Part shown: positions 5,114 to 63,523 of the stretch, in pieces
Position numbering within the stretch: the first letter of the stretch is position 1
Layout of the letters: each line of letters opens with the position of its first letter
Origin: Paraphysomonas bandaiensis
Taxonomy: Eukaryota; Protista; Chrysophyceae
Assembly (NCBI GenBank): GCA_965644295.1
Contig: CBFFRP010000505.1
Coordinates: 1-63,523 of the forward strand
Length of the DNA stretch: 63,523 nt
Direction of reading: 5' to 3'
Translations under genes and position numbers: made by a program
Notes under the pieces: model-generated
What the model was told of the DNA's origin: nothing
The model's database searches: none
Seen by the model: the letters and a program-made list of their open reading frames with translations, nothing else

Positions 5114-5140
5114 TGTTCTCTCATGTAATAATCAGATCTT
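5114..5140 (+). mobile_element. ~25-bp LINE 3'-terminal stub flanked by a 17-18-bp target site duplication
   Basis: GTTCTCTCATGTAATAATCAGATCT matches the 3' ends of the LINE copies at 6311 (-) and 18582 (+); TATATATAATATATGTG at 5099-5115 and 5141-5157. Confidence 0.8.
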
Positions 5141-16200: not shown

Positions 16201-18582
16201 TCTCCTCGAAGGACACCGACTCGCACGCATGGTGTGTCGACTACGTCACCACGTCCGCAACACATCTTCGCTATAAATGTGCATCCCCAGACTGTAAACT
16301 GTTAGCGCTTAACACACAAATACTCCCGACACTACTCTACAAAGCCACCAAAGCCTCCTGGACATACGACAGATACCTGGACATAGACAAACTTCTTGCA
16401 CGAGCAGCCAGGAAAGTCCTCCGTCTACCCCCGGGATACCCCACAGCCCTCATCTATCTGCCCACGAAATACAAAGGACTTGGCTTGCGTAAGTTCTCCA
16501 CCTGTGCTCAGACCCAAAAGTGGCACACAATCCAAAGGGCCATCACCTTGGGAGGGGAACCCAAGCGAGCCGCCATATCCATCTTACAACGTCACGATCA
16601 CAATCGCCCAGACATCGACCTGTACATCACTAGCCTGGTCCAATGGGGACAACAGCTCGGAATTCGACTGCAGCCCCCATCCCCAGCCACGCCCCAATTC
16701 CGAGAAACCATCGACAAGGTCCAATCCCAACTCCAACTGCACAACAATCATCCACACGACTTTCAAGCCATATTCACTGATGGTTCCTTCACTCGCACAA
16801 ACCTCTCTCCGGCTCATCTCCTAGGTGACTCTCACGTGCAGCCCGAAACACACAACGGGGGGGCAGCAATTGTCTGGCTCCCACCCAAAACCAACTGGAG
16901 CACAGGAATAACCAAAATCCTTCGACTTACAGCCCCCGAGCAAACCTTACCCGGGATAACCCCATACACCTACGAGACCCTGGCAATGTCAGCAGCCCTC
17001 ACGTTCTCGAAACTCGTATCCCCCACCGTACCTATGTGCACCGATTGCCAAGCAGTCCAAACACGAACCACGGAAGCTCTCTCTCGTCGGTGGCGGGCCC
17101 TCGGCACAAAGCCCCAGGGCATCTTTTACGAATGCCTCGCCACAGGAAATCACCGACAGCGACCAATCCGATGAGTCCGCTCCCATCCAGAACGCCGAAC
17201 ACAAGATAGGAACAACTGGACCTACAACGACTATGGCATTTACATAGCTGACGCTGCCGCCAGTGGAGAGTGGTCGGCGATCGACAAAATACTAGGCGGC
17301 ACAAACTACAGCGTGGTCACGACTGAGATCACACACCTCATCGACGAATTCCTCACTGCCGGCCAATGGCAATGGAGAAGATACGACAAATTCCTCCACA
17401 CCGACTGTGGACCCATGCTAGGGGATGTCACCGAACTCCAACATCAATGGGACCTCCACCAATACATCCTCACGCGTGACGGCACGTACCCCGCAAGCGC
17501 AAGCCGGGACTCGCAGTACTGGACACGCAGCGGCACCAGGCTCCCACACAAACTTCACCCTCTCAAGCCCAATAATTCGTCCAACTGCTATGTCCCATTC
17601 CACGACCGCATCCGTGAAACGGCATATGTCTGGGACAAATCATACGCGATGGGCAGAAACAGGGCCAAGGGCAAACATGGAGACGAACTTACAACAGCAG
17701 CCAAATGCACAGACTGTGACCACAACCTGGACAACATGGCGCATATGCTCCTCCACTGTCCACACCCTGAGATCGCCCAACTACGTGAACATGCCTTCCA
17801 CACACAGCAAACCCAGCTTACAAAACTCCACGGGCAACTGCAACCCATCCCCTGGCTACACACCGCTCTACAAAGACTGGCGAGGGCTGCCTGGGATCCC
17901 ACCACACCCCAGGTTGAGAGATACTGGACCGGACAACTAACAGCCTTGCAACTCGCTAATGCTTTCGGACACAACATCTCCACCTCGCTACACGACCACC
18001 AGTTCCATAAACTCGAGAAATCCGTCACCAAAGTCCTGCTCCCCTCTACAATGGAGGAATAAACATGCTCAAAAACAGAGGATGCCGATTTCACAGTAAC
18101 GATGCGACAACAATGACACCAACCTCGACTCATGCCAGCTCACAACCACGTCGCACATACCCCACCACCAACCCGACGATCCTCCAGCTACTTAAAGCGA
18201 CATCCACCCCCAGAGCCGTGCCCCACACGAGACCCCGCCCTCAACGCAGGCCTGCCAACCCGATCCGGAGGCAGACAACACTCATTTCCGACAGAACCAC
18301 AACCACAACTGCTGGTAATCCCACCACCTCCGCTGACACACATTCACAGAATGGCACGTCACCCCCCACACCCCGACTCGCATGCAGATATGGACCACCA
18401 GACACACTACCCAAAGGACGACCACCAGACTAAACTTCAAACAAGGGATGGTTGCACCAAGGTGCTTGCAGCAATGCACAAGCAATCCCGAGATAACTGA
18501 GCATTTCATAATGTGAGTTACAACTAGTCTAAAGTTATAGATAGATAAATGCAACAAGCTATCTCATGTAATAATCAGATCT
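13298..18582 (+). mobile_element. LINE copy C, 5'-truncated at the start of APE: APE-RT-RNase H-CCHC-3' UTR, inactivated
   Basis: NVNG...DCLYLLDVR...YLPP...GGDFNA...SRIDH...DHRPV (APE); YADD (RT); FTDGS (RH). ORFs at 13515, 14748 and 17313 share one frame, broken by TAA (14727) and TGA (17172; Trp in copy B). Frameshift near 18040. Ends CATGTAATAATCAGATCT. Confidence 0.93.
13515..18500 (+). pseudogene. LINE APE-RT-RNase H polyprotein with two nonsense mutations and at least one frameshift
   Basis: Collinear with copy B and with the APE at 58521-59790. Confidence 0.9.
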
Positions 18583-18593
18583 AATTATTATAG

Positions 18594-19187: not shown

Positions 19188-19300
19188 GGTCATGTACGTA
19201 ACTCTTTCCACAATTGAATGATATTTGAAGCATGCATCCGATCATCATAAACTTCACGCAATACCAACTTTAAGAAATGCGCTTCAACTCTACTCGAATA
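19188..19300 (+). repeat. 113-bp dispersed repeat, copy 2, interrupted by LINE copy D
   Basis: Match to 11569-11681 stops exactly where LINE homology begins. Confidence 0.85.
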
Positions 19301-19951
19301 TTTGGTGCCTGTTGTAACACTATACCAGTAGAAGACCTGGACACACGGGTCTACAACGCCCGCATTCGACCCCGGGACGAAAATGATCACTCAGACTGCA
19401 TCTTCATCGATGCCTGTACAGACATCCACCCACAGGAGGAAATCCTCCTGGATTACGGAGATGGGCATCTCATCTCTCGCACAAACAAGCCACCAGATGA
19501 TGAGTGCCTCCGCATCTATAGAAAATACCTCGCAACTGTAGACGCCACAGAAGCCCACCCACCCCCACCCAGACGCTCCCCCCGCATACACCCCCCCGCC
19601 ACCCACAAACCTCGGAGAACACAGAGAACCACTCCCTCGAAAGCAAAGGCAGCGCCCCCCCGAGAGCAAGCTCGAAACCACACTCCTTCCACGTCAGCAT
19701 TCATAGATGACTCCACTGAACAATGGGCCTTCTACTCACCGTCTGGCCTCATTGCCATGACACTATATCCTTCAGAATTACAACAACTACTTGAGATCCC
19801 CAGAGAGACCGCCACCCGTAGTACTATCAAGAACCTAGTTAACACCTGCCTCAAGAATGGGGAAATATGCACCGCTAGGTCGTACACAACCGCTGAGGTC
19901 AACACAACCCCAGAAAATGGTCTCTGTGGGATAGGAGCAATTGGTCCCCTC
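19301..19951 (+). mobile_element. LINE copy D, left piece (C-terminal half of SET1, start of OTU-like 1)
   Basis: FGACCNTIP...EEILLDYG...PENGLCGIGAIGPL, then breaks at the TIR. Confidence 0.9.
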
Positions 19952-47246: not shown

Positions 47247-47708
47247 TGTAGTTGTTCTTAAGAACAACGTATGCTCACACAAAAACAACACTGATCTATA
47301 ACGTTTTAAAAAAATTTTAAGTGCACGCCAGCGGGCTGCTACACTGTTGAACTCACCAGCGGGTGATGCTCCTCAACTCAGACGCAAACCGCGAAAGAAT
47401 TTAAATAAATCGTTATTTAAAACGTTATATAGAAAAGTGAGTAACACTGCTATACAACTCTACAGTAACACACACATACAACATCATGTTCAGCATTTCA
47501 CTTCAGCACACAACACACCAGATCAGAAGTATTTTATCCGGTACGTATGTACAGCTTCAACACTCCGTGTATACACTGAAAGAGTAGAAACTGAATATGT
47601 AACTGAAAACTGAAAATACAAAAACACTCTGTACGTGTTAGAGAGTACAACAGAAGAGTAACATATAATACTACTACCAACGCAGAAAATAACCAGTACT
47701 GCGTTACA
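47247..47708 (-). repeat. 3' LTR (462 bp)
   Basis: One substitution seen versus the 5' LTR (AAAAAATTT vs AAAAGATTT). Confidence 0.95.
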
Positions 47709-47711
47709 CTA

Positions 47712-47725
47712 CCCTCTTTCCCCCC
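47712..47725 (-). promoter_or_regulatory. Polypurine tract
   Basis: GGGGGGAAAGAGGG 3 nt upstream of the 3' LTR on the minus strand. Confidence 0.9.
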
Positions 47726-47938
47726 AGCTGGAGAAATTAGATTGTGAATACAGACTGTGATTCTTGTATGCAAATACTTAAATCGGCCATATTAGATAGC
47801 GTCATTCTAAGTATAAACAAACAAAATCAGATTTAAACAGATATTGAGAATAAACTAGATAGACAAGGTAGTATTATAATAGAAATAAAAGAACATTGCA
47901 AATATTATCATATAATATAATAGAAGAATAAAACCTGT

Positions 47939-50900
47939 TTACAAGAGTATATCAGGAAAACTCTTGCAAAACTCCACATCGACAAGCACCATGGTAGACG
48001 GATTGAAATCGAAGCATAGTCCATAGCAGTAAACGTCATACGCACTCCATTCATAGGTAGTGTCAAAGAGTGGGCAGTATAAATCGATGCGTAAACGGCG
48101 TTTGCCTGCCCATCGTTTATAACGGCATAATACTACATAATTTGTGACATAGCAATCCGGTAATGATAATGCGTCGTAAAAATCTGCTCCCCAAGCTCGT
48201 AGGTTGATGTACACCTTTTGGCCTGGTTGAACTCCATCAATCTGCTGTTTCCGCATTCGTAGTCGTTGTTCTTTAGCTTCCTTAGCAGAAAATAAAAGTG
48301 GAAACAACGCAGGAATGTCTTTACAATACTGCTGGAAAGCCCGTGCGGTTGCAAGATCGGAATTGTATGGAATCCACACTTGTGAATCATCACTAAATAA
48401 TACGAGAAAATCCATAGTAGATCTCTTTTCAGGATCTCCCCGATATGCCACAATCTTTCGCACTTCATACTGGTTATAGTCTACTAAAGCAATGCGAAAT
48501 GCCTCATCATGAGTACCAAAAAATGGTTTAAGCCAAGACATATGAAAGACTACCTCAAATCGCATTACAATATGTGTACAGGTGATATCTGCTTTGTACG
48601 TAGAGACAACCTCGTATGGACCTTTAAATCTAGGATATAGTTTTGACGGTTTAAATTTCGAAGAATTTGGTTGGAATAAAACAAGCTGTCCGGGTTGATA
48701 TTCCGTTAAGGTCTCCGGAGGTGTTTTGGATTTTCTCTTTGCTTGGATCTTGCGTTGGACATCACATGCAATCTCACGTATAGTTCTCAAATTCTGATTT
48801 ATAAGAGATAAATATTCCGTAGTATCAACCGAATCTGACACAGCATCTGACAATTTGAAATAAGGTTTGTCTATTGTACCAAATGTAAACTCAAAAGGTG
48901 ACAATCCCGTTTCGCTACTTATTTCATCATTCAGTATGAACTGGATTACCATATAGCACTCCGGCTCTCCCCAGCAATCTTGCAACCTTTCATCATGTAC
49001 AAGAGCACTTAGAAATCGTAATGTCTCTCTATGAGTTCTCTCCACCATGTTGGACTCATGTCTATCTGTCAAAGACATTCTGAAGCGCACACCAAACCAT
49101 TTTAACAATAACTGAACAACCTCTGCTGTAATATTCGAACCTGGGTCTGAAATTAACACTTCCGATATTCCGTACGTCACGAAATAAGAAAACAACGCTC
49201 GCGCTACTCCAACTGCCGTGTAATCAGTTGCTGGATACAGACCAACCAAACGCGATGGCAATTGCTTTACAACATGGATGCAACAATGCCCTTTCTTGTC
49301 AGGAGGAGACACAGAGAGTGTGTCAAATCCTACATAATGTCTACAATGCTCGGAGTCTAAAGCTCTGATGGGTGCCTGCAAGGAAGCGCTCATTCCCGCA
49401 TTGAACTTCTGACAAATGGGACACCGATCTATGAAATCTTGTATCACCTCTGTGGTTAACTTGTGACCTGGAAATACCTTACTCAGCTTTAACCATGTTC
49501 GTTTAACTCCATGGTGACCTATCCGACCATTGTGTACTAAGTCGAACGCCTCTTTGGGTGAACTAGGTTTAATACCTTGAGCCGCTAGTTCATCTAAAGC
49601 TGCAAGTATCTCAGCTGGGAACACTGAATAACAAGCTACATCGTCGGTTTCTGAACTCCATTCCCCTACTTGGTTAAGCTCAATAAGCTGATCATCTGGT
49701 AGTAAGTCCGTATTTTCAAACATGACTACTTCACCACATACGACACTTTCTTCTGGAAAACATTCCATACAAACAGACAATAACATAACATGAGCCACAG
49801 CCGATTCCTGATCCTTACGAGATAACCAATCAGCAAATCTATTTAATTTTCCCTTGAAGTGAAGCAAGTCGAAATTGAAATTCTGTATAAACATCCGCAT
49901 GCGTACTATTCTGTCAACAACCGAAACTTCCATCCATTTAAGATTGGCGTGATCCGTCATGATCGTGAACTTTTTACCTCTCAAATAATACGACAAGGCA
50001 TATACACAAAAGAATATTCCAAAACACTCCTTGTCAATAGTGGACCACTTCAATGTTGGTTCCGAAAATTTCTTCGACACCATTGCAATTACTTGATAGA
50101 ATTCTTGACCATTGGCATCAATGAAAATTTGTAACAACACACCTCCACATGCATAAAACGAAGCATCTGTCATCAAGATCCATCTTAAAGAGTAGTCAGG
50201 ATGATACAGAGTAAGAGATTTTAAAATCGCCTCTTTAAATCTACTAAATTCCTCCCTGTAATTTACTTTCCAACCATTCTCATTCCAGTCAAAATTCTTC
50301 TTCGTCATGTCATGTAACTTATGAGTAAGGTCACTATATAACGGAATAAAAGGTTTAAAATATATTGCCGCTCCCAGGAATCTCTGCATTTGTTTCGTCT
50401 TATTTTTCCCTTCTGGAAATTCAATTGCAGTTACTGATAATTTTCGGGCCTCAGTTAATTGGTAAGTGTTGTCCTTACAAAGATAGCCGAAAAATTCCAC
50501 TGATGAATAGCCAAATTTGCTTTTCGACAATTTCAACACGACATTATAATAAGTACATTTTTTAATGACCTTCTTGAATTTCTCAATAGCATCCTGATAA
50601 TCATACGCTAACACCAGTAAGTTGTCAAATATCACTACCATCCACTCTGAGAATTCATTGAAAATATCAGACACTACATGCATCACAACTCCACTTGCCG
50701 GAGAAACTCCCTCTGGCATAAACTTTGGTTCGAACTGGCCCCATGGAGTTTGAACTGACAACAGTGCTGAAACTGATTCATGAAGTCTAATACCATGGAA
50801 AGCATTACATATATCTAAATCAATGAACACCTTATACCCAGCTGCTTTATGTAATTCTTTTATAACATCTGGTATGGGATAATGCGGACTTTCAATTTCT

Positions 50901-51883
50901 AAATTAACACGCCTGTAATCACCACATATTCGAATAAAAGGTTTCGTAGCCTTGGGTGCTACTACTATTGGTGATGCATAAGGACTCGTACTGGGACGAT
51001 AAAAGTATCCACACATCCTATTGAACTCCTCCTTAGTACGTTCATATAACATAGGTGGTATCCTTCTCATATTCTTTGGTTTAATTCTATCAGGAATAGT
51101 ACTTTTCACCTTTAATTTTAACTCAGGAACATGCTGAATTCCAGTCCATTCTCTAGGAACAAAGACATCAACTGCATCCTCTCTCAAAACTCTCAATATA
51201 TCAGTTTGTTGAGCGAAATCAGGATGTACTTTTGATTCTAGTTCACTAAAATATTTCTCCCTAGCCTCATCCACTGACTGTTCCAAAAATGTCACTAAAC
51301 TTCCAAAACTACATGGTTCGGGAATCATATCATCTTCCTCTGACTGTTCTGGAATTGGATTTTCCCAAGGATCACACACTGGTCCTGACGACATATATCT
51401 CCTAAGTTCGTCAATGTCTTCACCAATATTGGCAAGAATTTCTATCTCATTTAAATTAACTGATTGCTCCGCACTCAGTGATGCTTTCTTAATCATGTTC
51501 ATAAATAACTCGGAAAAATGCTCACAGATTGCCGGTAATCCTATAATAATATCCTTTGCCAAACCGTCCAAAACATACAGTGAAAGTTGTGCTTTGTAGG
51601 TCTTACCCTCATCTTCAAAAGCAATTGTAACAGGAATATATCCTTTAAGTTCAATCTGATGTCCGTCTGCTACTTTAACCCTCAACTTTTTATGTACCAT
51701 ATCTTTTAACAATTTGTCCCCACACTTCTTAACAAAATTTGATGAAATAAAATTATCCGAAGATGATCCGGAATCAAATAAAACCATTTCCACATTAATC
51801 TTATCACCACAATTATTTATTATCATTCCTTGCCTATGTACAGCATTGCGAAATCTGCTGGAAGTATCATTGTAATCTCGCAT
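47939..51883 (-). CDS. pol: Gypsy Pol (1314 aa): protease, RT, RNase H, integrase, GPY, chromodomain-like, C-terminal extension
   Basis: LFDSGS; RICGDYRRVN, DLDICNAF, MPEG, IFDN; TDAS, DKE, TDH; H..GHHG..CPIC, SDPGS, VER; KGPYEV; YEVRKIVAYR...FLVLF...VWIP. Confidence 0.96.
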   Translation of the reverse strand: MRDYNDTSSRFRNAVHRQGMIINNCGDKINVEMVLFDSGSSSDNFISSNFVKKCGDKLLKDMVHKKLRVKVADGHQIELKGYIPVTIAFEDEGKTYKAQLSLYVLDGLAKDIIIGLPAICEHFSELFMNMIKKASLSAEQSVNLNEIEILANIGEDIDELRRYMSSGPVCDPWENPIPEQSEEDDMIPEPCSFGSLVTFLEQSVDEAREKYFSELESKVHPDFAQQTDILRVLREDAVDVFVPREWTGIQHVPELKLKVKSTIPDRIKPKNMRRIPPMLYERTKEEFNRMCGYFYRPSTSPYASPIVVAPKATKPFIRICGDYRRVNLEIESPHYPIPDVIKELHKAAGYKVFIDLDICNAFHGIRLHESVSALLSVQTPWGQFEPKFMPEGVSPASGVVMHVVSDIFNEFSEWMVVIFDNLLVLAYDYQDAIEKFKKVIKKCTYYNVVLKLSKSKFGYSSVEFFGYLCKDNTYQLTEARKLSVTAIEFPEGKNKTKQMQRFLGAAIYFKPFIPLYSDLTHKLHDMTKKNFDWNENGWKVNYREEFSRFKEAILKSLTLYHPDYSLRWILMTDASFYACGGVLLQIFIDANGQEFYQVIAMVSKKFSEPTLKWSTIDKECFGIFFCVYALSYYLRGKKFTIMTDHANLKWMEVSVVDRIVRMRMFIQNFNFDLLHFKGKLNRFADWLSRKDQESAVAHVMLLSVCMECFPEESVVCGEVVMFENTDLLPDDQLIELNQVGEWSSETDDVACYSVFPAEILAALDELAAQGIKPSSPKEAFDLVHNGRIGHHGVKRTWLKLSKVFPGHKLTTEVIQDFIDRCPICQKFNAGMSASLQAPIRALDSEHCRHYVGFDTLSVSPPDKKGHCCIHVVKQLPSRLVGLYPATDYTAVGVARALFSYFVTYGISEVLISDPGSNITAEVVQLLLKWFGVRFRMSLTDRHESNMVERTHRETLRFLSALVHDERLQDCWGEPECYMVIQFILNDEISSETGLSPFEFTFGTIDKPYFKLSDAVSDSVDTTEYLSLINQNLRTIREIACDVQRKIQAKRKSKTPPETLTEYQPGQLVLFQPNSSKFKPSKLYPRFKGPYEVVSTYKADITCTHIVMRFEVVFHMSWLKPFFGTHDEAFRIALVDYNQYEVRKIVAYRGDPEKRSTMDFLVLFSDDSQVWIPYNSDLATARAFQQYCKDIPALFPLLFSAKEAKEQRLRMRKQQIDGVQPGQKVYINLRAWGADFYDALSLPDCYVTNYVVLCRYKRWAGKRRLRIDLYCPLFDTTYEWSAYDVYCYGLCFDFNPSTMVLVDVEFCKSFPDILL

Positions 51884-51904
51884 AGCCGCTATCAGTGATT
51901 GTGC

Positions 51905-53521
51905 TCAAAGGTCATCCAAAGGATTGTCATCCCCTTGTTGATCCTCTTCAACATCAGGTTGATCTCTGGTAAGAATACGTACATCACCAGGACGCTTTCT
52001 ATCCCCAGGATATCTTTTCAATTGAGCTGGAGAATTACTGTATCGACGTTGAGGTGGTGCATTAATACTTGGTTTGGGCATTACTGTTAACCCCACTCTT
52101 TCAGTCATCTTCTTAAGAGCTTCCGTCAAAACAGCTTTATCATGTGAAAATTTACATGACTTATCTTTGCACCCACCATCTTGCGTCAATTCTCTAAAAC
52201 ATGGGGAAGATTTCAATACCTCAGCCGCATACAAATCTTCTTCATGTTTCAGTACGTTTTGCTCCTCATCACTAACAGATTCTGAGTCAGAAACTTGTTG
52301 CTCAATTTGGTGTAGTCGCTTATCTACCGCAGACGATTTTGTTCGAAAATTAAAACGACTTCTGAATTGATTACATTTTAACGACAAATCCCTAGTAATC
52401 TTCAACTGCTTAAAGAATTCTTTCAGAAAAGCTTTTACTGAAGGGAAATTTTCCGACCTCATGAGTCTCTTAGTAGTATCTCTCATACACGCAGGAATAA
52501 GACTCATCCACTGTTCCAACGAACCACCTCTCTTAGTCGTTACTAAAGGTATACTCTCATCAAGTTTGTTCATCTTAGCAGCCTCCTCTAAGAAATCATA
52601 CCGCTGATTGAACTTCGTTTCCAAAATACAAAGATCCTCATCAACTCGACGAAAATCCTCCAACTTGTCCATTGTTACTCTGTACGGCAAACACGATTCA
52701 AGCAACATCGAATTAAAATCCATCATATCCAAAGGTCTGAACTGATACTTCGCTGCCTCAATAACTCGCGTTACACTTGCATCTATGCATTCCAAAGGTT
52801 CAGTATAATCATCAGGATATAATTCCATCAACGTAAACCTAATCATTTCCTTAGCCCTGCCTTCCAACAATGTAAACACAGAAGGAATTGGTCCATTGTC
52901 ACGACATTTCTCAAACTCAGCAATTCGTTCCAAGAAAACCAAAAACCCATCTAAAGTAATTTCCGACAACCTTATCTCCAGGTATGAATCATCTTCTTTG
53001 GTCAACGTAACTTTAGCCTTCGGTTGACGATCAATTTCACGAAGTGCTTCCTGAATAGTCTGACGTTTAGGTCTGACCGGTGGTCGCTCCTCTTCACTCC
53101 TGAGAGCTTGAGTAGCATTCAATACACCCTCACGCACAGCATTCTCTATGCGCGTATGCAACAACTCAGGGTCAATATACTGCTGCTCACGTCGCTCAAT
53201 AGTTGCAGCTACAGGCTGTTCACCATTCCCATGACCATCTAATTTAGACTCTTCAAACGGTATCTCCGAAAGCTGATCAACTTGTATAATTTCTGAATTA
53301 GCTCTCGATGACCTTCCAGATCTCCTCTGATTGATCTCCTCAAGACTCCGTTGAACATGCTCATTGAACGCCTGTTGCTGATGAAAACGCTGCTCTATAT
53401 CACCAAAACGTTGTTCTATACCACCGAAACGCTGCTCCATATACTCACGTTGCTCACGCATATACTGCATCAAGTCTTCCAGAGTAAGCTCTGTCTTCGC
53501 ATCTCCTTCTGCAGGCTCCAT
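51905..53521 (-). CDS. gag: Gag-like protein (538 aa)
   Basis: Located between the 5' LTR and pol; CFRELTQDGGCKDKSCKFSH finger. Confidence 0.85.
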   Translation of the reverse strand: MEPAEGDAKTELTLEDLMQYMREQREYMEQRFGGIEQRFGDIEQRFHQQQAFNEHVQRSLEEINQRRSGRSSRANSEIIQVDQLSEIPFEESKLDGHGNGEQPVAATIERREQQYIDPELLHTRIENAVREGVLNATQALRSEEERPPVRPKRQTIQEALREIDRQPKAKVTLTKEDDSYLEIRLSEITLDGFLVFLERIAEFEKCRDNGPIPSVFTLLEGRAKEMIRFTLMELYPDDYTEPLECIDASVTRVIEAAKYQFRPLDMMDFNSMLLESCLPYRVTMDKLEDFRRVDEDLCILETKFNQRYDFLEEAAKMNKLDESIPLVTTKRGGSLEQWMSLIPACMRDTTKRLMRSENFPSVKAFLKEFFKQLKITRDLSLKCNQFRSRFNFRTKSSAVDKRLHQIEQQVSDSESVSDEEQNVLKHEEDLYAAEVLKSSPCFRELTQDGGCKDKSCKFSHDKAVLTEALKKMTERVGLTVMPKPSINAPPQRRYSNSPAQLKRYPGDRKRPGDVRILTRDQPDVEEDQQGDDNPLDDL

Positions 53522-53599
53522 GACTCTTAAAACAGTTCAAAGGGCTCAATAACACAATGAATGTATAATGTATTGTTCTTATCAACAGAGTAATATTAC

Positions 53600-54061
53600 T
53601 GTAGTTGTTCTTAAGAACAACGTATGCTCACACAAAAACAACACTGATCTATAACGTTTTAAAAAGATTTTAAGTGCACGCCAGCGGGCTGCTACACTGT
53701 TGAACTCACCAGCGGGTGATGCTCCTCAACTCAGACGCAAACCGCGAAAGAATTTAAATAAATCGTTATTTAAAACGTTATATAGAAAAGTGAGTAACAC
53801 TGCTATACAACTCTACAGTAACACACACATACAACATCATGTTCAGCATTTCACTTCAGCACACAACACACCAGATCAGAAGTATTTTATCCGGTACGTA
53901 TGTACAGCTTCAACACTCCGTGTATACACTGAAAGAGTAGAAACTGAATATGTAACTGAAAACTGAAAATACAAAAACACTCTGTACGTGTTAGAGAGTA
54001 CAACAGAAGAGTAACATATAATACTACTACCAACGCAGAAAATAACCAGTACTGCGTTACA
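53600..54061 (-). repeat. 5' LTR (462 bp)
   Basis: Direct repeat of 47247-47708. Confidence 0.95.
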
Positions 54062-54912
54062 CACGTGAAGCAATGCGGCCTGATCACGTTTAGACTCCTG
54101 CTCGCTAATATATGGCTGGCCGATCTACGATACAGGCGCAACAAAGCAGTGTATTAGGACAGTGTCAATCATAAGTATTGACATAATATTGACATGCACG
54201 TCATACACTACAGGTACAGTGGGAATGTACAGCTATATGCGGTTTTGCCATTAATCTAGAAAACTGGCTCACGTACAGTGATGCGAGGGCCGTCGTCTTA
54301 CACTCTAACCCAGCACAAGGCTGAGCAGAGAAGCGCGTCTTAATTGCCAGCAACAAAACTCTCGTTAAGTGCTGACAAATCCCCGTTTAGGGAGGTGCCT
54401 TTATATCTCATATCCGTGTTACCGGAGAGAAGACCTGCACCCCACTGCGCCCCCAAGACCCACTTATACCATTCAACTCACATCAGTGCGCACAGTGCTG
54501 ATCAGACACATGTGAACAGAGAGTGTGAGTTGGTAGCATGCGACACACGCAACAGACCACTTCACGCCTGAAAACTAACCTGATTAATAGTGAACAACCT
54601 TCTTCTGCTGGAGATGAGACCGCATATCAGAGGAGTCTGTGCTATGATGGTATCATGTATGTCATGTGCTGTGGTGTGAGTATGTGTGTGCTGATCTGTG
54701 CACAAGAATTCAAATATCCTCCTCACACACATACATACATACACCTCTATGCGCATAGAGTACTACTCGTGCAAACGAATACATACACAATACTGCAGCA
54801 GTATAGTATAGTACAATATACCGGTATACGAGAAATACTCCTCAAATACTCCTCAAATACTCCTAAAAACGTGGGGAAAAAAAATCCCACGATTGCATAA
54901 TGTTTACTTCTC

Positions 54913-57900
54913 CTCCCGGAATACTCTACCCTGCACCCAACCCGACCCACGAAGGGACCATTGCTTGATCCCGACGACCCCACCGACAATGAATACCTAC
55001 AAGAACTACTCAACCACAGCCAAGCCGTGATGGCATCCCTTCCGGACTCAACGATTGCAGAGGTGGGTAACAGGGCAGTTATAGCCTACCTGGACGAATT
55101 AATTGACGCCTACCGAATAGCTCTCTCCGCTGACGTGCCTACAAAGACAGGTCTCCCACCTCAATACTGGGCTCAAACGGATGCACTCATCCTTATGGCC
55201 GAAACCCACGGTCTCCACATCAGGATATGGCAGGACCCAACGCTACCTACAGAGCCCGCATTCCTCAACCCCAATTGGGCTGCGTGGGCGGATCATCACC
55301 GTACCTTCTTTCCAGACACCCCGCGCAAGACGCCTCAGGACATATTCTGTTGTAATCAGCATTTCTTCCTCGACCTCAGGGAACCTGCAGAAGACGAACT
55401 CCACAGCCTCATGGAGCTCCTCCCATACCTATATGCTGATAGGCTTGTCCCACCCCTTCCATCCACCCCAGACTACACTCACCCTGCCCGAACCCAGCAG
55501 GGACCGGAATACGCCTCAGACAGCAGCGGCGATGGCCCGCCCACTCACAAGCATCCACACGACAATCCCCCAACGCGAAGAGGTGCGAAACCACACCGAC
55601 CCAGACCACGACAATTTGGACCTGGATACAGCAGCGACGACAGCAGCGATGGTCCGCCCAAGCGACGACCACGCAAACCCTCGACTGTGATCCGACAACC
55701 CACATCCACAGAAAATACCCACCAAGCCGATGCTACCACCACCTTGACAGCTCCAGAAACTGCGGTACAACCCCCCAGGCGACGCAATCGCGGCCTGACG
55801 CTAGCCGACTACTTTCCACCCATCCCGCAGTCCGAGTCCTCCGCCCGGTTCACCCCCAACGATCCACGTACACTCCCACCCACAGATCAAAACCCACAAG
55901 AAAACACCCCGGAACTAACACCTCTCACGCAAGTCAGGGCAACCCCACGCCCGACAACACCCCCCTTGACACCGCAACCCCAGCCTGCCCGACGAGGAGC
56001 GTCCCCGTTCACCAGTTCACTTGCCAACGCCTGGGCAGCATACGACAACACAAACCGAGTCGCAGTCTCCCTCCGCGAAGACCTGCTCTGCCACGTACAC
56101 AACACCGTCATGGCAGGCACGACTGACTGGACTCGACTATTCCACATCATCCACGATGATGCAAACTACATTCGAGTAGCCAACTTTGATTGGGAGGCTG
56201 ACTTCAGAGCCACGACAGAGCGCGGCCTAGGCCCCCTTGCAACCGCGTACCAACTCCACAACTCCCCCTCGCCAGGAGACTATCCCAAAGTCCCCCTCCA
56301 AACTGCTGATGAGGCAAAAGAACTGCATAAGTTCATCACATATCTCCAACGACTCTGTCTCGCTTCCGGACAGGCACACACGCACCGCCTACTCAGCATC
56401 CTTCAATGCGCGCACAAGGCTCTAACCACCATGCCCCCGCAGCGATGCGCACTCTCTGCAGATCAGCACATGGAGATCACTGACGTCCAAACACTGCTCC
56501 AGCTTCTTCGTACCAACTTCCGACTATGGAAAGAAACCTCAGACTCCTTATCTAGCGGCTGGGTAATGCTACACAACCACCACACCCACGACCCCAAGAC
56601 TGCAACCACACACAACGTCGCTGTAACCAACAAACATTGCTTCCTCCTACGAATACCGGATATCGGTTCCAAGCTCGACGATGCGCACTGCAGAGCCAAA
56701 TTGGCACTCTCCCACTTCATCCATCGCGCAGCACAGAGGACCCCACAGCCACACCCTAGAAAGGAGCATCAATCCCAAGCAGCCCTGCCAACGCCCACGT
56801 CACTATCGATACCCGCAGGCCACCTCACCCTAAGCACCACACAGCGGGGTGCCCGAGCCATAACCGCGCGCCTAGTCGAACCGGGCACCCATAACTCACC
56901 ACGAACAGCCATACAGACAGCTGGGCGTGTGTTACGAGTACACGTAACTACCGCGTCCGTCCAGGCAGCTCACCGCATACCCGCAAACGGGTACTGCGCA
57001 TACGGAACACTTTACCGACTGCACACGCTCTGCGTGGGAATGCGACACACAGCCAATCACTGGAATTTAGATCTCCGGAAACCAGAGCATCGACTACACC
57101 TAGGCCACTGGCTTGGCCAACTTCGGACCGCAGCACTAGACAGTCCACACTGCACACCAACCATCCTTAGCAAAACTGAGCACGCCATACACTCCCTTAC
57201 CCCCACATACACTACTCCGCAAGACATTCAACACTGGCTCTCCGTCCGCGAGCTACATATTCTATCCTCCTACATTGGCCCAGTCACCACATGGACAGCA
57301 GATGGTGACAACATCACAATCGTCGGAATCCCCGACGCACCAATCACTCACAGCCCCGCCTGGACATCCGATGAACTGAGAGATGCCATCACCGACGATC
57401 GACCTCACATTGTTCTGCACGACGCTCACTACTACCACCTTAATCCCAGAGGGCTAGCAGCGGAGCTAGACAACGCACTTCTTGATCTCGAAGCAGCATT
57501 TCTGAGCCCACAACTACACCGACCCACCAGTCCAACAGAACCTAGCACTAGGAACACCGCCCCTCCGGCGCCCCTGCCTCCGAAACAACCCCCCCAAAGC
57601 ATCACCCACAGCATCACACCCTGGCCGCCGACACCAACAAACTGCACGACGACCAACCTCCCCCGGAGGGGTCCCCACGTCTCCACATCCTTGACGTCAC
57701 CCGGAGACCACTCTCAACACCGCACGTACACGACAGCGGGCGCTCCCCCATCTGACGCGCCGCCACACATTCCTGAACTTCGAGATGTCCCCGGAATAAG
57801 AAGAGCCAAAGGAAAGAAAGCACGGAACCCAACGCCCGTCCCCACGCAAAAACAGCCTGCCCGTACAGCCCGCACCACGAGCTCTTACGCAGAAGACCCC

Positions 57901-58602
57901 GACGAAGTCCAAACGCACGCCATATACCGCCCGCGGGCCACTTTCAACACACTACTCCAAACGGCCCACCCACCCCTCCCACTCACCTGGGACCCAACGC
58001 TTCGATACAAGGTACTAATGGGCACGGCAGACACAGTTACCAAAGGGAACGCCCTGTACGCGGGAGAGCCAATCCCTGCCCATACCATTATTTCTGAGTA
58101 CACTGGACACCGCCTACCCATCGCAGAAGCCAGGTCCACCGGTTACATTTCCGACTACCTTGTGCAAGACGCGAAAGGTACATTTGCGATAGACGCAAGG
58201 GATAAACGAAGCAAAAGCATACTATGCGCAGCGGGGTACATAAATGATCCATTACAGGCCAGGGCGGCTAATGTAGAATTCCACACGAAAAATAACAAAA
58301 TCTACATCAGAACCACACGGAACATTGCAGCTCACGAGGAACTACTTGTACACTACGGGTACAGATACTGGCAAGACCCCAAGTGGCCGCTTGAGATCTT
58401 ATTACAAGCGAGAGAGGCATATGCTGACGACGTTGAATTCAATCACATGCACAGGCAACACCCAAGTCCCCAGAGCCGGACCACAGCCTGGCGTCATGTA
58501 CCACGACCTTCACATTCTCCACATGGAACGTCAACGGTAACCCCTCCAACAACCCAGGAAAAATCGAAGCTATCCTACACTACATACGCACACACCACAT
58601 AG
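54913..58602 (+). CDS. LINE upstream polyprotein segment: OTU-like 1 (C-terminal part), Pro/Thr-rich linkers, OTU-like 2 (~56970-57440), SET domain 2 (~58042-58371)
   Basis: Open >1200 codons; IPANGYCAY...WLSVREL...HYY; GNALYAGEPIPAHTIISEYTG...IDA...AGYINDP...ANVEF...TTRNIAAHEELLVHYGYRYW. Confidence 0.8.
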   Translation, partial: LPEYSTLHPTRPTKGPLLDPDDPTDNEYLQELLNHSQAVMASLPDSTIAEVGNRAVIAYLDELIDAYRIALSADVPTKTGLPPQYWAQTDALILMAETHGLHIRIWQDPTLPTEPAFLNPNWAAWADHHRTFFPDTPRKTPQDIFCCNQHFFLDLREPAEDELHSLMELLPYLYADRLVPPLPSTPDYTHPARTQQGPEYASDSSGDGPPTHKHPHDNPPTRRGAKPHRPRPRQFGPGYSSDDSSDGPPKRRPRKPSTVIRQPTSTENTHQADATTTLTAPETAVQPPRRRNRGLTLADYFPPIPQSESSARFTPNDPRTLPPTDQNPQENTPELTPLTQVRATPRPTTPPLTPQPQPARRGASPFTSSLANAWAAYDNTNRVAVSLREDLLCHVHNTVMAGTTDWTRLFHIIHDDANYIRVANFDWEADFRATTERGLGPLATAYQLHNSPSPGDYPKVPLQTADEAKELHKFITYLQRLCLASGQAHTHRLLSILQCAHKALTTMPPQRCALSADQHMEITDVQTLLQLLRTNFRLWKETSDSLSSGWVMLHNHHTHDPKTATTHNVAVTNKHCFLLRIPDIGSKLDDAHCRAKLALSHFIHRAAQRTPQPHPRKEHQSQAALPTPTSLSIPAGHLTLSTTQRGARAITARLVEPGTHNSPRTAIQTAGRVLRVHVTTASVQAAHRIPANGYCAYGTLYRLHTLCVGMRHTANHWNLDLRKPEHRLHLGHWLGQLRTAALDSPHCTPTILSKTEHAIHSLTPTYTTPQDIQHWLSVRELHILSSYIGPVTTWTADGDNITIVGIPDAPITHSPAWTSDELRDAITDDRPHIVLHDAHYYHLNPRGLAAELDNALLDLEAAFLSPQLHRPTSPTEPSTRNTAPPAPLPPKQPPQSITHSITPWPPTPTNCTTTNLPRRGPHVSTSLTSPGDHSQHRTYTTAGAPPSDAPPHIPELRDVPGIRRAKGKKARNPTPVPTQKQPARTARTTSSYAEDPDEVQTHAIYRPRATFNTLLQTAHPPLPLTWDPTLRYKVLMGTADTVTKGNALYAGEPIPAHTIISEYTGHRLPIAEARSTGYISDYLVQDAKGTFAIDARDKRSKSILCAAGYINDPLQARAANVEFHTKNNKIYIRTTRNIAAHEELLVHYGYRYWQDPKWPLEILLQAREAYADDVEFNHMHRQHPSPQSRTTAWRHVPRPSHSPHGTSTVTPPTTQEKSKLSYTTYAHTT

Positions 58603-61600
58603 ACTGTCTTTACCTGCTCGACGTCCGCCTGTCACAAAACCAGGCACTATACCTTGCTGACTACATCCAGGACCAGATTCCAGGGGCTCTTATCTGCAAC
58701 TTTCTCAACTCGACGCGGAAACAGGGCCCCAACGATCCGCACATGGGAGGAACTATTGCAGTGATCAGCGAAGCGTGGAAAGGAAGAGTCCGCCACACAG
58801 GCTCCGACTGCACTGGATTAGGGCTCATCTCTCGAATCGAATTTCACACCGGCAGACCTAACAGAGAAGAGAGATTCACTACCATAGGAGTGTACCTCCC
58901 CCCCAAGCCTGCGACCGATGGACCCTGCACACTGTGGACATCACTAAAAGCCTTCGGCAAGAATGCTCACAGGAACGGCGCCACGGGACCCTACGACATA
59001 CTCACGAACATCCTATCCAAATGGATCACCAAAGCCAGGGCAAACAACCACACAGTACTAGTTGGCGGAGATTTCAACGCCACCCTCGAGGGACAAACAG
59101 GTAAAAGGGACCTCAGAGGTTTAGCAAGATCCCTGCAGCTTACAGCCCCTCTCATACAAACCCTTGACCAGGAGGCACCATACCACACCTTTTACTGGAA
59201 AGACCGCGGCATCTCCAGAATAGACCATATACTACATTCTCCCCTTCCCACACACTTTCATAACGCTAGAAATGGATGCCACACATCTGATGCCATCACT
59301 GCTGCACCATTTGATCACAGACCGGTCTGGATCCAGATCGATATTAGCGGTACAGGCCCAACCCTTCCCAAGGAACGGCACCGTCAGATTCCTCCACGGC
59401 TCAACATCAACCCTGCTGACCACGACATGGTAGAAGAATTCCAGACCCACCTACACAACCACCACCACAAATTATCCACGCTCCCCACGCACCCCCACCC
59501 CGCAGAAAACGCAGCCATAAAACTGGCGCTCCTCCATCGTATCACAATAGAAGCGGCCCACGATACCCGTCACGCGGACAGAACCAAGAAAAACGGCATC
59601 CATGCAAAATGCCAACGGAAACGATCCCGGTTCAAGGATGGCTTCTCCGCCGAAATGAGAGTCCTACAAATGGCACTCCACCTGATCGTATATCTCAAAC
59701 GAAAGCTCTTTACCAGATCCGGCCACCTACACCCCCGTGTCACCGATGCATACTTATACAGCATCGTCCGGAGAGGAATCTGCAGATGGGAGCACACCCT
59801 GGCCGCCGACACCAACAAACTGCACGACGACCAACCTCCCCCGGAGGGGTCCCCACGTCTCCACATCCTTGACGTCACCCGGAGACCACTCTCAACACCG
59901 CACGTACACGACAGCGGGCGCTCCCCCATCTGACGCGCCGCCACACATTCCTGAACTTCGAGATGTCCCCGGAATAAGAAGAGCCAAAGGAAAGAAAGCA
60001 CGGAACCCAACGCCCGTCCCCACGCAAAAACAGCCTGCCCGTACAGCCCGCACCACGAGCTCTTACGCAGAAGACCCCGACGAAGTCCAAACGCACGCCA
60101 TATACCGCCCGCGGGCCACTTTCAACACACTACTCCAAACGGCCCACCCACCCCTCCCACTCACCTGGGACCCAACGCTTCGATACAAGGTACTAATGGG
60201 CACGGCAGACACAGTTACCAAAGGGAACGCCCTGTACGCGGGAGAGCCAATCCCTGCCCATACCATTATTTCTGAGTACACTGGACACCGCCTACCCATC
60301 GCAGAAGCCAGGTCCACCGGTTACATTTCCGACTACCTTGTGCAAGACGCGAAAGGTACATTTGCGATAGACGCAAGGGATAAACGAAGCAAAAGCATAC
60401 TATGCGCAGCGGGGTACATAAATGATCCATTACAGGCCAGGGCGGCTAATGTAGAATTCCACACGAAAAATAACAAAATCTACATCAGAACCACACGGAA
60501 CATTGCAGCTCACGAGGAACTACTTGTACACTACGGGTACAGATACTGGCAAGACCCCAAGTGGCCGCTTGAGATCTTATTACAAGCGAGAGAGGCATAT
60601 GCTGACGACGTTGAATTCAATCACATGCACAGGCAACACCCAAGTCCCCAGAGCCGGACCACAGCCTGGCGTCATGTACCACGACCTTCACATTCTCCAC
60701 ATGGAACGTCAACGGTAACCCCTCCAACAACCCAGGAAAAATCGAAGCTATCCTACACTACATACGCACACACCACATAGACTGTCTTTACCTGCTCGAC
60801 GTCCGCCTGTCACAAAACCAGGCACTATACCTTGCTGACTACATCCAGGACCAGATTCCAGGGGCTCTTATCTGCAACTTTCTCAACTCGACGCGGAAAC
60901 AGGGCCCCAACGATCCGCACATGGGAGGAACTATTGCAGTGATCAGCGAAGCGTGGAAAGGAAGAGTCCGCCACACAGGCTCCGACTGCACTGGATTAGG
61001 GCTCATCTCTCGAATCGAATTTCACACCGGCAGACCTAACAGAGAAGAGAGATTCACTACCATAGGAGTGTACCTCCCCCCCAAGCCTGCGACCGATGGA
61101 CCCTGCACACTGTGGACATCACTAAAAGCCTTCGGCAAGAATGCTCACAGGAACGGCGCCACGGGACCCTACGACATACTCACGAACATCCTATCCAAAT
61201 GGATCACCAAAGCCAGGGCAAACAACCACACAGTACTAGTTGGCGGAGATTTCAACGCCACCCTCGAGGGACAAACAGGTAAAAGGGACCTCAGAGGTTT
61301 AGCAAGATCCCTGCAGCTTACAGCCCCTCTCATACAAACCCTTGACCAGGAGGCACCATACCACACCTTTTACTGGAAAGACCGCGGCATCTCCAGAATA
61401 GACCATATACTACATTCTCCCCTTCCCACACACTTTCATAACGCTAGAAATGGATGCCACACATCTGATGCCATCACTGCTGCACCATTTGATCACAGAC
61501 CGGTCTGGATCCAGATCGATATTAGCGGTACAGGCCCAACCCTTCCCAAGGAACGGCACCGTCAGATTCCTCCACGGCTCAACATCAACCCTGCTGACCA

Positions 61601-63523
61601 CGACATGGTAGAAGAATTCCAGACCCACCTACACAACCACCACCACAAATTATCCACGCTCCCCACGCACCCCCACCCCGCAGAAAACGCAGCCATAAAA
61701 CTGGCGCTCCTCCATCGTATCACAATAGAAGCGGCCCACGATACCCGTCACGCGGACAGAACCAAGAAAAACGGCATCCATGCAAAATGCCAACGGAAAC
61801 GATCCCGGTTCAAGGATGGCTTCTCCGCCGAAATGAGAGTCCTACAAATGGCACTCCACCTGATCGTATATCTCAAACGAAAGCTCTTTACCAGATCCGG
61901 CCACCTACACCCCCGTGTCACCGATGCATACTTATACAGCATCGTCCGGAGAGGAATCTGCAGATGGGAGCACACCCTGGCCGCCGACACCAACAAACTG
62001 CACGACGACCAACCTCCCCCGGAGGGGTCCCCACGTCTCCACATCCTTGACGTCACCCGGAGACCACTCTCAACACCGCACGTACACGACAGCGGGCGCT
62101 CCCCCATCTGACGCGCCGCCACACATTCCTGAACTTCGAGATGTCCCCGGAATAAGAAGAGCCAAAGGAAAGAAAGCACGGAACCCAACGCCCGTCCCCA
62201 CGCAAAAACAGCCTGCCCGTACAGCCCGCACCACGAGCTCTTACGCAGAAGACCCCGACGAAGTCCAAACGCACGCCATATACCGCCCGCGGGCCACTTT
62301 CAACACACTACTCCAAACGGCCCACCCACCCCTCCCACTCACCTGGGACCCAACGCTTCGATACAAGGTACTAATGGGCACGGCAGACACAGTTACCAAA
62401 GGGAACGCCCTGTACGCGGGAGAGCCAATCCCTGCCCATACCATTATTTCTGAGTACACTGGACACCGCCTACCCATCGCAGAAGCCAGGTCCACCGGTT
62501 ACATTTCCGACTACCTTGTGCAAGACGCGAAAGGTACATTTGCGATAGACGCAAGGGATAAACGAAGCAAAAGCATACTATGCGCAGCGGGGTACATAAA
62601 TGATCCATTACAGGCCAGGGCGGCTAATGTAGAATTCCACACGAAAAATAACAAAATCTACATCAGAACCACACGGAACATTGCAGCTCACGAGGAACTA
62701 CTTGTACACTACGGGTACAGATACTGGCAAGACCCCAAGTGGCCGCTTGAGATCTTATTACAAGCGAGAGAGGCATATGCTGACGACGTTGAATTCAATC
62801 ACATGCACAGGCAACACCCAAGTCCCCAGAGCCGGACCACAGCCTGGCGTCATGTACCACGACCTTCACATTCTCCACATGGAACGTCAACGGTAACCCC
62901 TCCAACAACCCAGGAAAAATCGAAGCTATCCTACACTACATACGCACACACCACATAGACTGTCTTTACCTGCTCGACGTCCGCCTGTCACAAAACCAGG
63001 CACTATACCTTGCTGACTACATCCAGGACCAGATTCCAGGGGCTCTTATCTGCAACTTTCTCAACTCGACGCGGAAACAGGGCCCCAACGATCCGCACAT
63101 GGGAGGAACTATTGCAGTGATCAGCGAAGCGTGGAAAGGAAGAGTCCGCCACACAGGCTCCGACTGCACTGGATTAGGGCTCATCTCTCGAATCGAATTT
63201 CACACCGGCAGACCTAACAGAGAAGAGAGATTCACTACCATAGGAGTGTACCTCCCCCCCAAGCCTGCGACCGATGGACCCTGCACACTGTGGACATCAC
63301 TAAAAGCCTTCGGCAAGAATGCTCACAGGAACGGCGCCACGGGACCCTACGACATACTCACGAACATCCTATCCAAATGGATCACCAAAGCCAGGGCAAA
63401 CAACCACACAGTACTAGTTGGCGGAGATTTCAACGCCACCCTCGAGGGACAAACAGGTAAAAGGGACCTCAGAGGTTTAGCAAGATCCCTGCAGCTTACA
63501 GCCCCTCTCATACAAACCCTTGA
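57615..63523 (+). repeat. Tandem array of a 2178-bp LINE segment (SET2+APE): units 57615-59792, 59793-61970, 61971-end (partial)
   Basis: Identical ORF pairs offset by 2178 (58743/60921, 59737/61915); junction GATGGGAG-CACACC-CTGGCCG. Confidence 0.97.
58437..59933 (+). CDS. APE-type endonuclease (frame open from 58437, first ATG only at 58743); C-terminus cut by the duplication junction
   Basis: FSTWNVNG (TWN at 58521), GGDFNA, SRIDH, DHRPV. Confidence 0.85.
   Translation: MQSHAQATPKSPEPDHSLASCTTTFTFSTWNVNGNPSNNPGKIEAILHYIRTHHIDCLYLLDVRLSQNQALYLADYIQDQIPGALICNFLNSTRKQGPNDPHMGGTIAVISEAWKGRVRHTGSDCTGLGLISRIEFHTGRPNREERFTTIGVYLPPKPATDGPCTLWTSLKAFGKNAHRNGATGPYDILTNILSKWITKARANNHTVLVGGDFNATLEGQTGKRDLRGLARSLQLTAPLIQTLDQEAPYHTFYWKDRGISRIDHILHSPLPTHFHNARNGCHTSDAITAAPFDHRPVWIQIDISGTGPTLPKERHRQIPPRLNINPADHDMVEEFQTHLHNHHHKLSTLPTHPHPAENAAIKLALLHRITIEAAHDTRHADRTKKNGIHAKCQRKRSRFKDGFSAEMRVLQMALHLIVYLKRKLFTRSGHLHPRVTDAYLYSIVRRGICRWEHTLAADTNKLHDDQPPPEGSPRLHILDVTRRPLSTPHVHDSGRSPI

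Follow-up and report, generated by a model that had tools for sequence, protein, structure and literature searches.

A LINE family of Paraphysomonas bandaiensis whose ORF2 joins SET domains and OTU-like modules to endonuclease and reverse transcriptase

The sequence analysed here is a contig of the chrysophyte Paraphysomonas bandaiensis (CBFFRP010000505.1; contig C505 of a 62.5 Mb genome in 669 contigs), taken at its full length of 63,523 nucleotides and hereafter referred to as the window. It is a nest of long interspersed nuclear element (LINE) copies, Gypsy elements and satellite. A first-pass annotation, made from the letters of the window, had described at 54913–59792 a LINE in which two SET-like methyltransferase domains and two OTU-like protease domains precede an apurinic/apyrimidinic endonuclease (APE) and a reverse transcriptase (RT). 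The analysis reported here identifies an autonomous, recently active LINE family, without long terminal repeats (LTRs) and with two open reading frames (ORFs), an ORF1 of ∼570–850 amino acids and a giant ORF2 of ∼3,400 amino acids. An intact frame, Pfam matches for SET, predicted folds for the OTU-like modules, the recurrent joining of SET2 to APE and purifying selection together support its reading as one LINE with SET1, OTU-like modules and SET2 ahead of APE and RT. I regard this identity and this architecture as close to certain.

LINE copies in the window

Four LINE pieces, labeled A to D, were mapped by self-BLAST and by BLAST against an intact copy of the same genome (C644:2114–13306, hereafter C644). 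Copy A (3022–4795, minus strand; C644 3422–5198 by BLAST) is 5′-truncated, is cut by a Gypsy LTR at 3003/3004, and contains SET1 and the complete OTU-like module 1. In its translation SET1 lies at 4636–4109 (minus strand; GVWAAEHIPSG..FPYVG, CCNT..YNA and EEILLDYG; Pfam SET) and OTU-like module 1 at 3829–3140 (minus strand; Cys loop PGNGLC; predicted fold). Copy B (6303–9677, minus strand; C644 10087–13465 by BLAST) is older, 81% identical and also 5′-truncated, and runs from RT, with a Pfam RVT_1 match, to the 3′ end. Copy C (13298–18588, plus strand; C644 8176–13463 by BLAST) is again 5′-truncated, is 96% identical to C644, and extends from the start of APE through RT and a CCHC tail to the 3′ untranslated region (UTR); it is split into three ORFs, with Pfam matches for APE and RVT_1. 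Copy D is in two parts (19300–19951 and 54910–59798, plus strand; C644 3877–4531 and 4529–9448 by BLAST). Copies A and D overlap, with 3004–3691 (minus strand) matching 54910–55597 at 94% identity and 3690–4340 (minus strand) matching 19300–19950 at 92% (self-BLAST). These identities, together with the intact copy in one frame, bear out the earlier tiling of the pieces into one element, and the SET and OTU motifs then quoted are all found, in the order given, in translations of the window.

Copy D begins inside SET1, the C-terminal half of which (CCNT .. EEILLDYG) lies at 19292–19531 on the plus strand, as found by tblastn and a genome search (SET1 residues 97–176, 94% identity; partial Pfam SET match, E = 0.0055). 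The N-terminal part of OTU-like module 1, with the Cys loop PENGLCG, is at 19811–19951 (plus strand; tblastn, OTU1 residues 1–47), and the module is cut at 19951/19952, just past this loop, by a 34,958-bp insert. Its remainder (..YWAQTD..AETHG.HIRIWQD .. CCNQHFFLD) lies at 54910–55461 (tblastn, OTU1 residues 47–230, 84% identity). Then come, all on the plus strand, a linker at 55510–55656 with two copies (55510–55539 and 55627–55656) of the motif [YF]xSDxS[GS]DGP, located by a regular expression over all subfamilies; a degenerate OTU-like middle module at 55990–56787 (in-register alignment, tblastn), with the Cys loop RGLG, from which the Cys is gone, and the His loop NKHCFLL; OTU-like module 2 at 56905–57540 (IPANGYCAYGTL .. 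HWLSVRELH .. TTW .. LHDAHYYHL; predicted fold); and SET2 at 58045–58359, a full-length Pfam SET match for which a genome scan gives identical coordinates. The open frame 54961–58602, of 1,213 codons, holds both OTU2 (PANGYC .. AHYYHL) and SET2 (GNALYA..EYTG, GYINDP and EELLVHYGYRYW).

Right after SET2, the alignment with C644 reveals a 37-bp deletion (∼58440/58441) that shifts the frame. The APE and the start of the APE–RT spacer (58437–59792, plus strand) are thus out of the SET2 frame; the APE matches Pfam Exo_endo_phos (E = 5e-8, on the ORF 58743–59933) and is 96% identical to that of C644. This segment ends where a tandem repeat restarts: positions 57615–59792 (linker, SET2 and part of APE) are repeated over 59793–63523 (plus strand; self-BLAST and repeated ORFs), with a period of 2,178 bp, 100% identity and ∼2.7 copies that include the deletion and reach the contig end. 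Either a genuine recent duplication or an artefact of assembly at the contig end could account for this repeat. A microhomology of ∼6 bp is present at its joint.

With its 5′ start inside SET1, an insert cutting OTU1, a 37-bp deletion and an APE caught in a tandem repeat, copy D is a dead, fragmented copy. The interval 54913–59792, given earlier as the location, comprises the larger half of this copy as far as the close of the first repeat unit; neither SET1 nor the OTU1 Cys loop is within it, both being at 19292–19951.

The 5′ ends of the mapped copies fall at C644 positions 3422, 3877, 8176 and 10087; copies extending to the 3′ end terminate at ∼13465. The common 3′ end motif occurs three times in the window, including that of copy C (18563–18582) and an isolated third 3′ end at 5120–5139. 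A 3′ UTR of ∼190 nucleotides (18395–18588; 6303–6500, minus strand) is conserved even in the copy of 81% identity and terminates in ..CTCATGTAATAATCAGATCT[AT]TTAT with no poly(A) following. In RNA fold prediction it does not outperform shuffled sequences (z = −0.40), and I therefore claim no hairpin in it. Comparison of flanks revealed a candidate 11-bp target-site duplication for copy B, TATTCCGAATT, present at the 3′ junction and ∼20 bp before the mapped 5′ end; the same comparison found none for copy C.

An intact element and its additional modules

In C644, all modules are contained in a single open frame of 3,731 codons, the likely start Met of which is codon 346. Along this frame lie SET1 (residues ∼510–650), OTU-like module 1 (∼781–985), the middle module (∼1161–1415), OTU-like module 2 (∼1471–1668), SET2 (∼1849–1953), APE (2020–2262; Pfam PF03372, E = 5.7e-12, N-terminal to RT), RT (∼2650–3000; Pfam RVT_1, E = 6.8e-19, and 2.3e-19 in copy C) and a CCHC knuckle (∼3490–3520); SET2 is separated from APE by only ∼45 residues. 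The order proposed from the window, with two SET and two OTU-like domains followed by APE, RT and CCHC, is thus that of an intact frame, with the correction that a third, degenerate OTU-like module, not listed before, lies between OTU1 and OTU2. A Pfam search of the full frames of C644 and of a second subfamily, C440, returned solely SET (in two stretches of C644), PRDM2_PR, Exo_endo_phos and RVT_1. Neither Pfam nor a search of PDB sequences confirmed the RNase H of the first-pass annotation; it is only suggested by a DGS..E..D motif pattern, and a relative of 38% identity has a sub-threshold RNase_H match. Among PDB sequences, R2 (E = 1.5e-10) ranks ahead of human L1 ORF2p (E = 6.5e-5) in similarity to the RT, the named relatives of which are limited to weak Chlorella matches.

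The additional modules do not stand in place of ORF1; they form an N-terminal extension of ORF2, and a separate ORF of 567 amino acids is found upstream in C644 (410–2110). Distant homologues of the latter (21–23% identity) are located 1.3–2.7 kb upstream of other subfamilies, and I therefore take it to be the ORF1 of the element. Further ORF1 loci are C42:103153–104547, C422:41928–43322 and C255:159774–161168, and the ORF1 frames of other subfamilies have 830–850 codons. Neither Pfam nor PDB sequences gave a match to ORF1, and a spacer of ∼1 kb with two long direct repeats separates it from the likely start of ORF2.

The linkage of the SET and OTU-like modules to APE and RT, on which the earlier description depended, is found across the genome: SET2 and APE are joined in one stop-free frame at no fewer than 35 loci. 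The C440 subfamily, 36% identical, has a 3,021-codon frame with SET, APE and RT, and C440, C433 and C143, which are 33–36% identical in the accessory region, all keep the order of middle module, OTU2, SET2, APE and RT in one frame. Several distant subfamilies also keep a complete OTU1. SET1 was found only at five or six loci, in the youngest subfamily, which is that of the window; its identity to SET2 is no more than 26%, which marks it as an independent, later acquisition and not as a recent duplicate. The motif [YF]xSDxS[GS]DGP, usually following QG.., is present at module borders in all subfamilies, even in elements 36% identical overall, while the surrounding linkers are not conserved. Besides the two copies in the linker of copy D, it was located at 3062–3091 (minus strand) and at residues 368, 1006 and 1040 of the C644 ORF2. 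The motif may serve in cleavage, phosphorylation or docking.

Both SET domains exceed the Pfam SET cut-off of 22.4 bits over the full profile, in agreement with their earlier assignment: SET2 matches PF00856 at E = 4.4e-9 and 37.1 bits in the frame 54961–58602, and SET1 of copy A at E = 2.6e-7 and 31.4 bits. The best PDB sequence match of SET2 is the H3K4 methyltransferase Set1 (E = 0.0011), followed by SET7 (SETD7; E = 0.0021) and, more weakly, KMT2C/D (E ∼0.04). The Tyr of the ELxxxY motif, in EELLVHYG of SET2 and EEILLDYG of SET1, is invariant in all subfamilies. In the alignment to Set1, YINDP of SET2 falls on ..INH.., the site of the NH motif. Across the whole genome, 98 Pfam SET matches were listed, roughly half of which are SET2 of the LINE family, and another repeated set of matches falls in identical 1,526-codon frames; many of the SET copies of this genome are thus transposon-borne. 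Among environmental proteins with a SET2-like SET, two are fused to a Ulp1/C48 cysteine protease and one to a protein kinase, so that SET is again found joined to a protease specific for ubiquitin-like proteins, here of another protease family.

For the OTU-like modules, sequence searches gave no significant OTU match. A profile of OTU1 against PDB sequences returned only nairovirus OTU domains, at an insignificant E ∼1.1–1.3, that of OTU2 returned a single insignificant match to a lectin repeat, and a 1,014-position profile searched against 1.84 billion representatives had no canonical OTU among its best 150 matches. AlphaFold2 models of OTU1 (the contiguous version of copy A; pLDDT 75.5, pTM 0.72) and OTU2 (pLDDT 71, pTM 0.71) were generated from 17-row alignments pooling the three modules of four subfamilies. 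In Foldseek, the best 50 rows for each model are all OTU deubiquitinases. In a wide scan of 48,161 PDB chains with VIA-align, which is independent of Foldseek, all of ranks 1–28 for OTU1 are OTU proteins (Z 7.6–4.1, up to 168 residues aligned), as are ranks 1–19 for OTU2 (Z 6.9–4.9, 116–141 residues). The top OTU rows include nairovirus OTUs, otubains, OTUD1/2/3, OTULIN, A20 and bacterial OTUs, and span the greater part of the domain, and the unrelated rows below them align over only 45–105 residues. The best ESM-Atlas match by TM-score is a PF02338 cluster (0.46/0.50), and an ESM-Atlas feature search with OTU2 and the middle module was uninformative (scores 0.76–0.88).

The predicted models also place conserved residues as in a cysteine protease of this kind. 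In OTU2, Cys31, His168 and His175 are invariant, Cys31 opening a helix (31–43) and His175 a strand (175–179); OTU1 likewise has an invariant Cys at a helix N-terminus and an invariant His on a strand. Three residues before the Cys is N, D or E, where Otu1-type enzymes have the Asp of DGxC, and a W..(T/V)(D/R)E..(L/M)(A/S)....I.IW stretch can be aligned with its counterpart in the Crimean-Congo haemorrhagic fever virus (CCHFV) OTU. Since Z stays below 8, I consider the case that OTU1 and OTU2 have the OTU fold to be moderate.

The three OTU-like modules align in register. The middle module matches OTU1 of the group-3 elements by tblastn (E = 2e-6), and OTU2 matches OTU1 weakly by hhalign (E = 0.012, probability 3.5%), so the common origin of the modules rests on the in-register alignment, the tblastn match of the middle module to OTU1 and the folds. 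The middle module has lost its Cys in the subfamily of the window and in groups 3 and 4, and keeps it in the C32/C426 group (GRGFC); it is taken as a pseudo-protease.

Selection, distribution and the insert in copy D

The ratio of nonsynonymous to synonymous substitution (dN/dS) was calculated by the Nei-Gojobori method against C644. It is 0.08 for SET1, 0.09–0.11 for OTU1, 0.14 for OTU2 and 0.12 for SET2, compared to 0.25 for the middle module, 0.07–0.27 for APE and RT, and 0.23–0.73, mostly 0.3–0.7, for the linkers. The SET and OTU modules are thus under purifying selection, at values (0.08–0.14) below those of most linkers, which is what the comparison of copies suggested in the first-pass annotation has yielded. 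The additional modules are selected, heritable parts of the element, and not captured debris.

Between copy D (54910–58440) and C644, the synonymous divergence falls from ∼1.06 in the 5′ modules (OTU1) to 0.35 in the middle module and 0.12–0.19 in OTU2 and SET2. This makes the 5′ part a mosaic between lineages, and suggests that lineages have recombined, or that templates were switched between them, inside ORF2. Over 7 kb, the copies C661 and C644 hardly differ, which indicates that the family moved recently.

Relatives outside this genome were sought by profile and word searches over 1.8 and 5.8 billion proteins. These revealed only fragments nearly identical to the elements of this genome, an 8.8-kb metagenome contig with a SET–APE gene of 60% identity followed by RT, and a 1.6-kb contig with a more divergent SET–APE fusion; the remaining protein matches are to SET alone. 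RT relatives of 30–47% identity are present in environmental data, some of which begin directly with APE. A word index places the C644 stretch in 20 runs from 13 studies, with marine metagenomes and four organism labels among them. In all four runs examined, from four studies, the 5.8-kb stretch of C644 from SET1 to SET2 and the start of APE is tiled by short contigs at 95–100% identity. A protein annotated in NCBI to a Nitrospiraceae metagenome-assembled genome is 88% identical to the APE/RT region of the LINE; the bacterial bin was probably contaminated with eukaryotic sequence.

The sequence that splits copy D (19952–54909) is not part of the LINE, as judged from its inverted repeats and from comparison of its flanks with copy A. 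It ends in terminal inverted repeats of ∼30 bp (AAGTAAACATTATGCAA.CGTGGGA...), 29 of 30 positions of which match in a script check, and is flanked by a 3-bp target duplication (CTC), with copy A as the comparison. It holds subterminal GGAGTATTT repeats, a strand-skewed satellite of ∼26 kb with units of ∼110–116 bp, and a Gypsy element (47247–54062) with an LTR pair of 463 bp, 99.8% identical, and a Pol with RT, RNase H and integrase. This insert is perhaps a giant DNA transposon, or else a composite.

Possible functions and comparison with known systems

The modules suggest a mechanism, which I put forward as a proposal drawn from domain content. During target-primed reverse transcription, the ORF2 protein would carry its own protein-modifying enzymes to the nicked chromatin and to its own ribonucleoprotein particle. 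There, the SET domains would methylate lysines, of nucleosomal histones or of host or element proteins, at the site of insertion or transcription, and the two OTU-fold modules with intact Cys and His would act as isopeptidases removing ubiquitin or a ubiquitin-like tag, comparable to the OTU of the nairovirus L protein. The net effect would be that host silencing or degradation of the element is blunted. For the whole of this statement, chromatin- and ubiquitin-modifying mechanism included, I estimate a probability of roughly 0.45; the chromatin writer, deubiquitinase and polyprotein-processing activities of the ORF2 protein are all predicted ones. A further extension, in which this protein is a self-contained chromatin-editing integration machine whose SET domains mark a histone lysine and whose OTU modules erase ubiquitin from histones or the ribonucleoprotein, with copies escaping or setting silencing, and in which the OTU, SET and APE set of stramenopile and animal Helentrons descends from such LINEs, is improbable.

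A number of observations weigh against the proposed mechanism. In both SET domains the His of the NH(S/C) motif is gone and only the Asn is kept (YINDP in SET2, CCNT in SET1), which justifies the earlier caution that such variants may alter activity; replacement of this His reportedly kills SUV39H1. For the OTU-like modules, the earlier assignment stands in that the predicted folds match OTU deubiquitinases first, and falls short in that Pfam OTU (PF02338) has no match at E ≤ 10 in six module sequences. Both models rest on just 17 sequences that mix three paralogous modules, the Foldseek E-values are all above 0.001, and Z-values near 7 fall within the range described by the tool as frequent among chance arrangements. 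The runs in which the element occurs seem to be assemblies of DNA. Lastly, polyprotein processing accounts for the OTU modules about equally well.

In that last explanation, which is possible if doubtful, the OTU-fold modules would cut the ORF2 polyprotein in cis at the module borders, freeing the SET pieces from APE and RT, with any deubiquitinase role secondary. Arterivirus PLP2, which is OTU-like, and tymovirus PRO are polyprotein-processing proteases of this sort, and the turnip yellow mosaic virus proteinase is among the structural matches of OTU1 (Z 4.0). An ORF2 of such length, with compact modules separated by long low-complexity linkers, three tandem papain-like modules of which one is degenerate, as in the tandem leader proteases of RNA viruses, and the strong conservation of [YF]xSDxS[GS]DGP at module borders would all fit processing. 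However, this motif occurs only after OTU1 and before SET1, not after the middle module or OTU2, nor in the short segment between SET2 and APE, and it contains no Gly-Gly-type site of the known OTU-like viral proteases. The best structural matches, moreover, are nairovirus OTUs, which do not process their own polyprotein.

The variant NH motifs in both SET domains could also be accommodated if the modules were mostly non-catalytic, their SET and OTU folds binding histone tails or ubiquitylated nucleosomes and steering integration to certain kinds of chromatin, for example islands of heterochromatin or of dense transposons, as the chromodomains of chromoviruses do. A middle module that is conserved after losing its Cys, and the window itself, with its nesting of LINE copies, Gypsy elements and satellite, are in line with such a role. 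However, across subfamilies ∼36–46% identical, neither the Cys and His of OTU1 and OTU2 nor the Tyr at the catalytic position of either SET domain varies, which exceeds the needs of binding, and numerous SET relatives have the variant [GR][YF][IVL]N[DE], a recurrence suggestive of a functioning subfamily and not of decay; I therefore consider mere binding rather unlikely. It is barely credible that the SET/OTU region does not belong to the LINE at all, and is a host gene fragment, a Helentron or an assembly chimera. The pieces in the window are indeed scattered, interrupted and duplicated, and Helentrons do join OTU to APE, with a SET gene in the proto-Helentron of Phytophthora (PMC4067079). 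But in several subfamilies a single uninterrupted frame runs through the modules, APE and RT, no Rep or helicase domain was found in these frames, and a metagenome contig holds SET–APE and then RT. The single frames, the ≥35 SET2–APE loci and the tiling in four runs of four studies led to the rejection of all three of these candidates.

The LINE toolkit is generally thought to be minimal, consisting of an RNA chaperone, a nuclease and an RT, and its interaction with chromatin is taken to be in the hands of the host. This young, selected family, with domains of the histone-methyltransferase and deubiquitinase types beside its nicking endonuclease, would be a direct example of a retrotransposon that brings its own chromatin or ubiquitin enzymes. 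It opens the arms race between transposons and histone-based silencing to experiment in a protist that can be cultured, using a small number of recombinant domains. A protist LINE also joins the short list of retroelements with captured epigenetic machinery (DNMT, MBD, chromodomain). The first-pass annotation named no earlier description of this architecture for a LINE, and full-text literature searches returned no LINE that carries SET or OTU; neither domain is mentioned in a 2019 review covering accessory domains of retrotransposon polyproteins (PMC6338049).

Among published systems, the Helentrons and proto-Helentrons come closest, rolling-circle DNA transposons with an OTU-like cysteine protease and a LINE-derived APE (Thomas et al., 2014, PMC4067079). 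Both systems have OTU and APE on a mobile element, and SET as well is shared with the proto-Helentron of Phytophthora, an oomycete and hence a stramenopile, for which a SET-domain gene is reported; the authors proposed a role of the protease in chromatin signalling or polyprotein cleavage (PMC4067079). Helentrons, however, encode Rep/helicase, move as DNA, and have OTU and SET in separate ORFs. In this LINE, all modules are fused with RT in one frame, Pfam finds no Rep/helicase in the full C644 and C440 frames, and the OTU fold is triplicated and too divergent for Pfam OTU. The family may bear on the origin of the OTU, SET and APE parts of Helentrons.

The best structural matches of the OTU-like modules are to the L protein of nairoviruses (CCHFV and relatives), with Z 6.9–7.6 and a root-mean-square deviation of 3.1–4.1 Å over 121–139 residues. 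The nairovirus OTU is N-terminal on a giant polymerase, and removes ubiquitin or ISG15 against host defence. The L protein is however an RNA virus polymerase with a single OTU and no SET or APE-type endonuclease, and identity is only 10–20%.

Capture of host chromatin or epigenetic domains by retroelement polyproteins, followed by their retention under selection, has parallels in the DNMT of dinoflagellate and charophyte retroelements (de Mendoza et al., 2018, PMC5890265), the MBD of arthropod Copia (PMC6673714) and the chromodomain of chromoviruses. These are LTR or tyrosine-recombinase elements with DNA-methylation or reader domains, and none is a LINE with SET or OTU. With the canonical APE-type LINEs (L1, CR1, I, Jockey), the family shares two ORFs, APE before RT, CCHC, 5′ truncation and perhaps, from the candidate in copy B, target-site duplication; it differs from them in an ORF2 ∼3 times the usual size, in five extra modules before APE, and in ending without a poly(A) tail.

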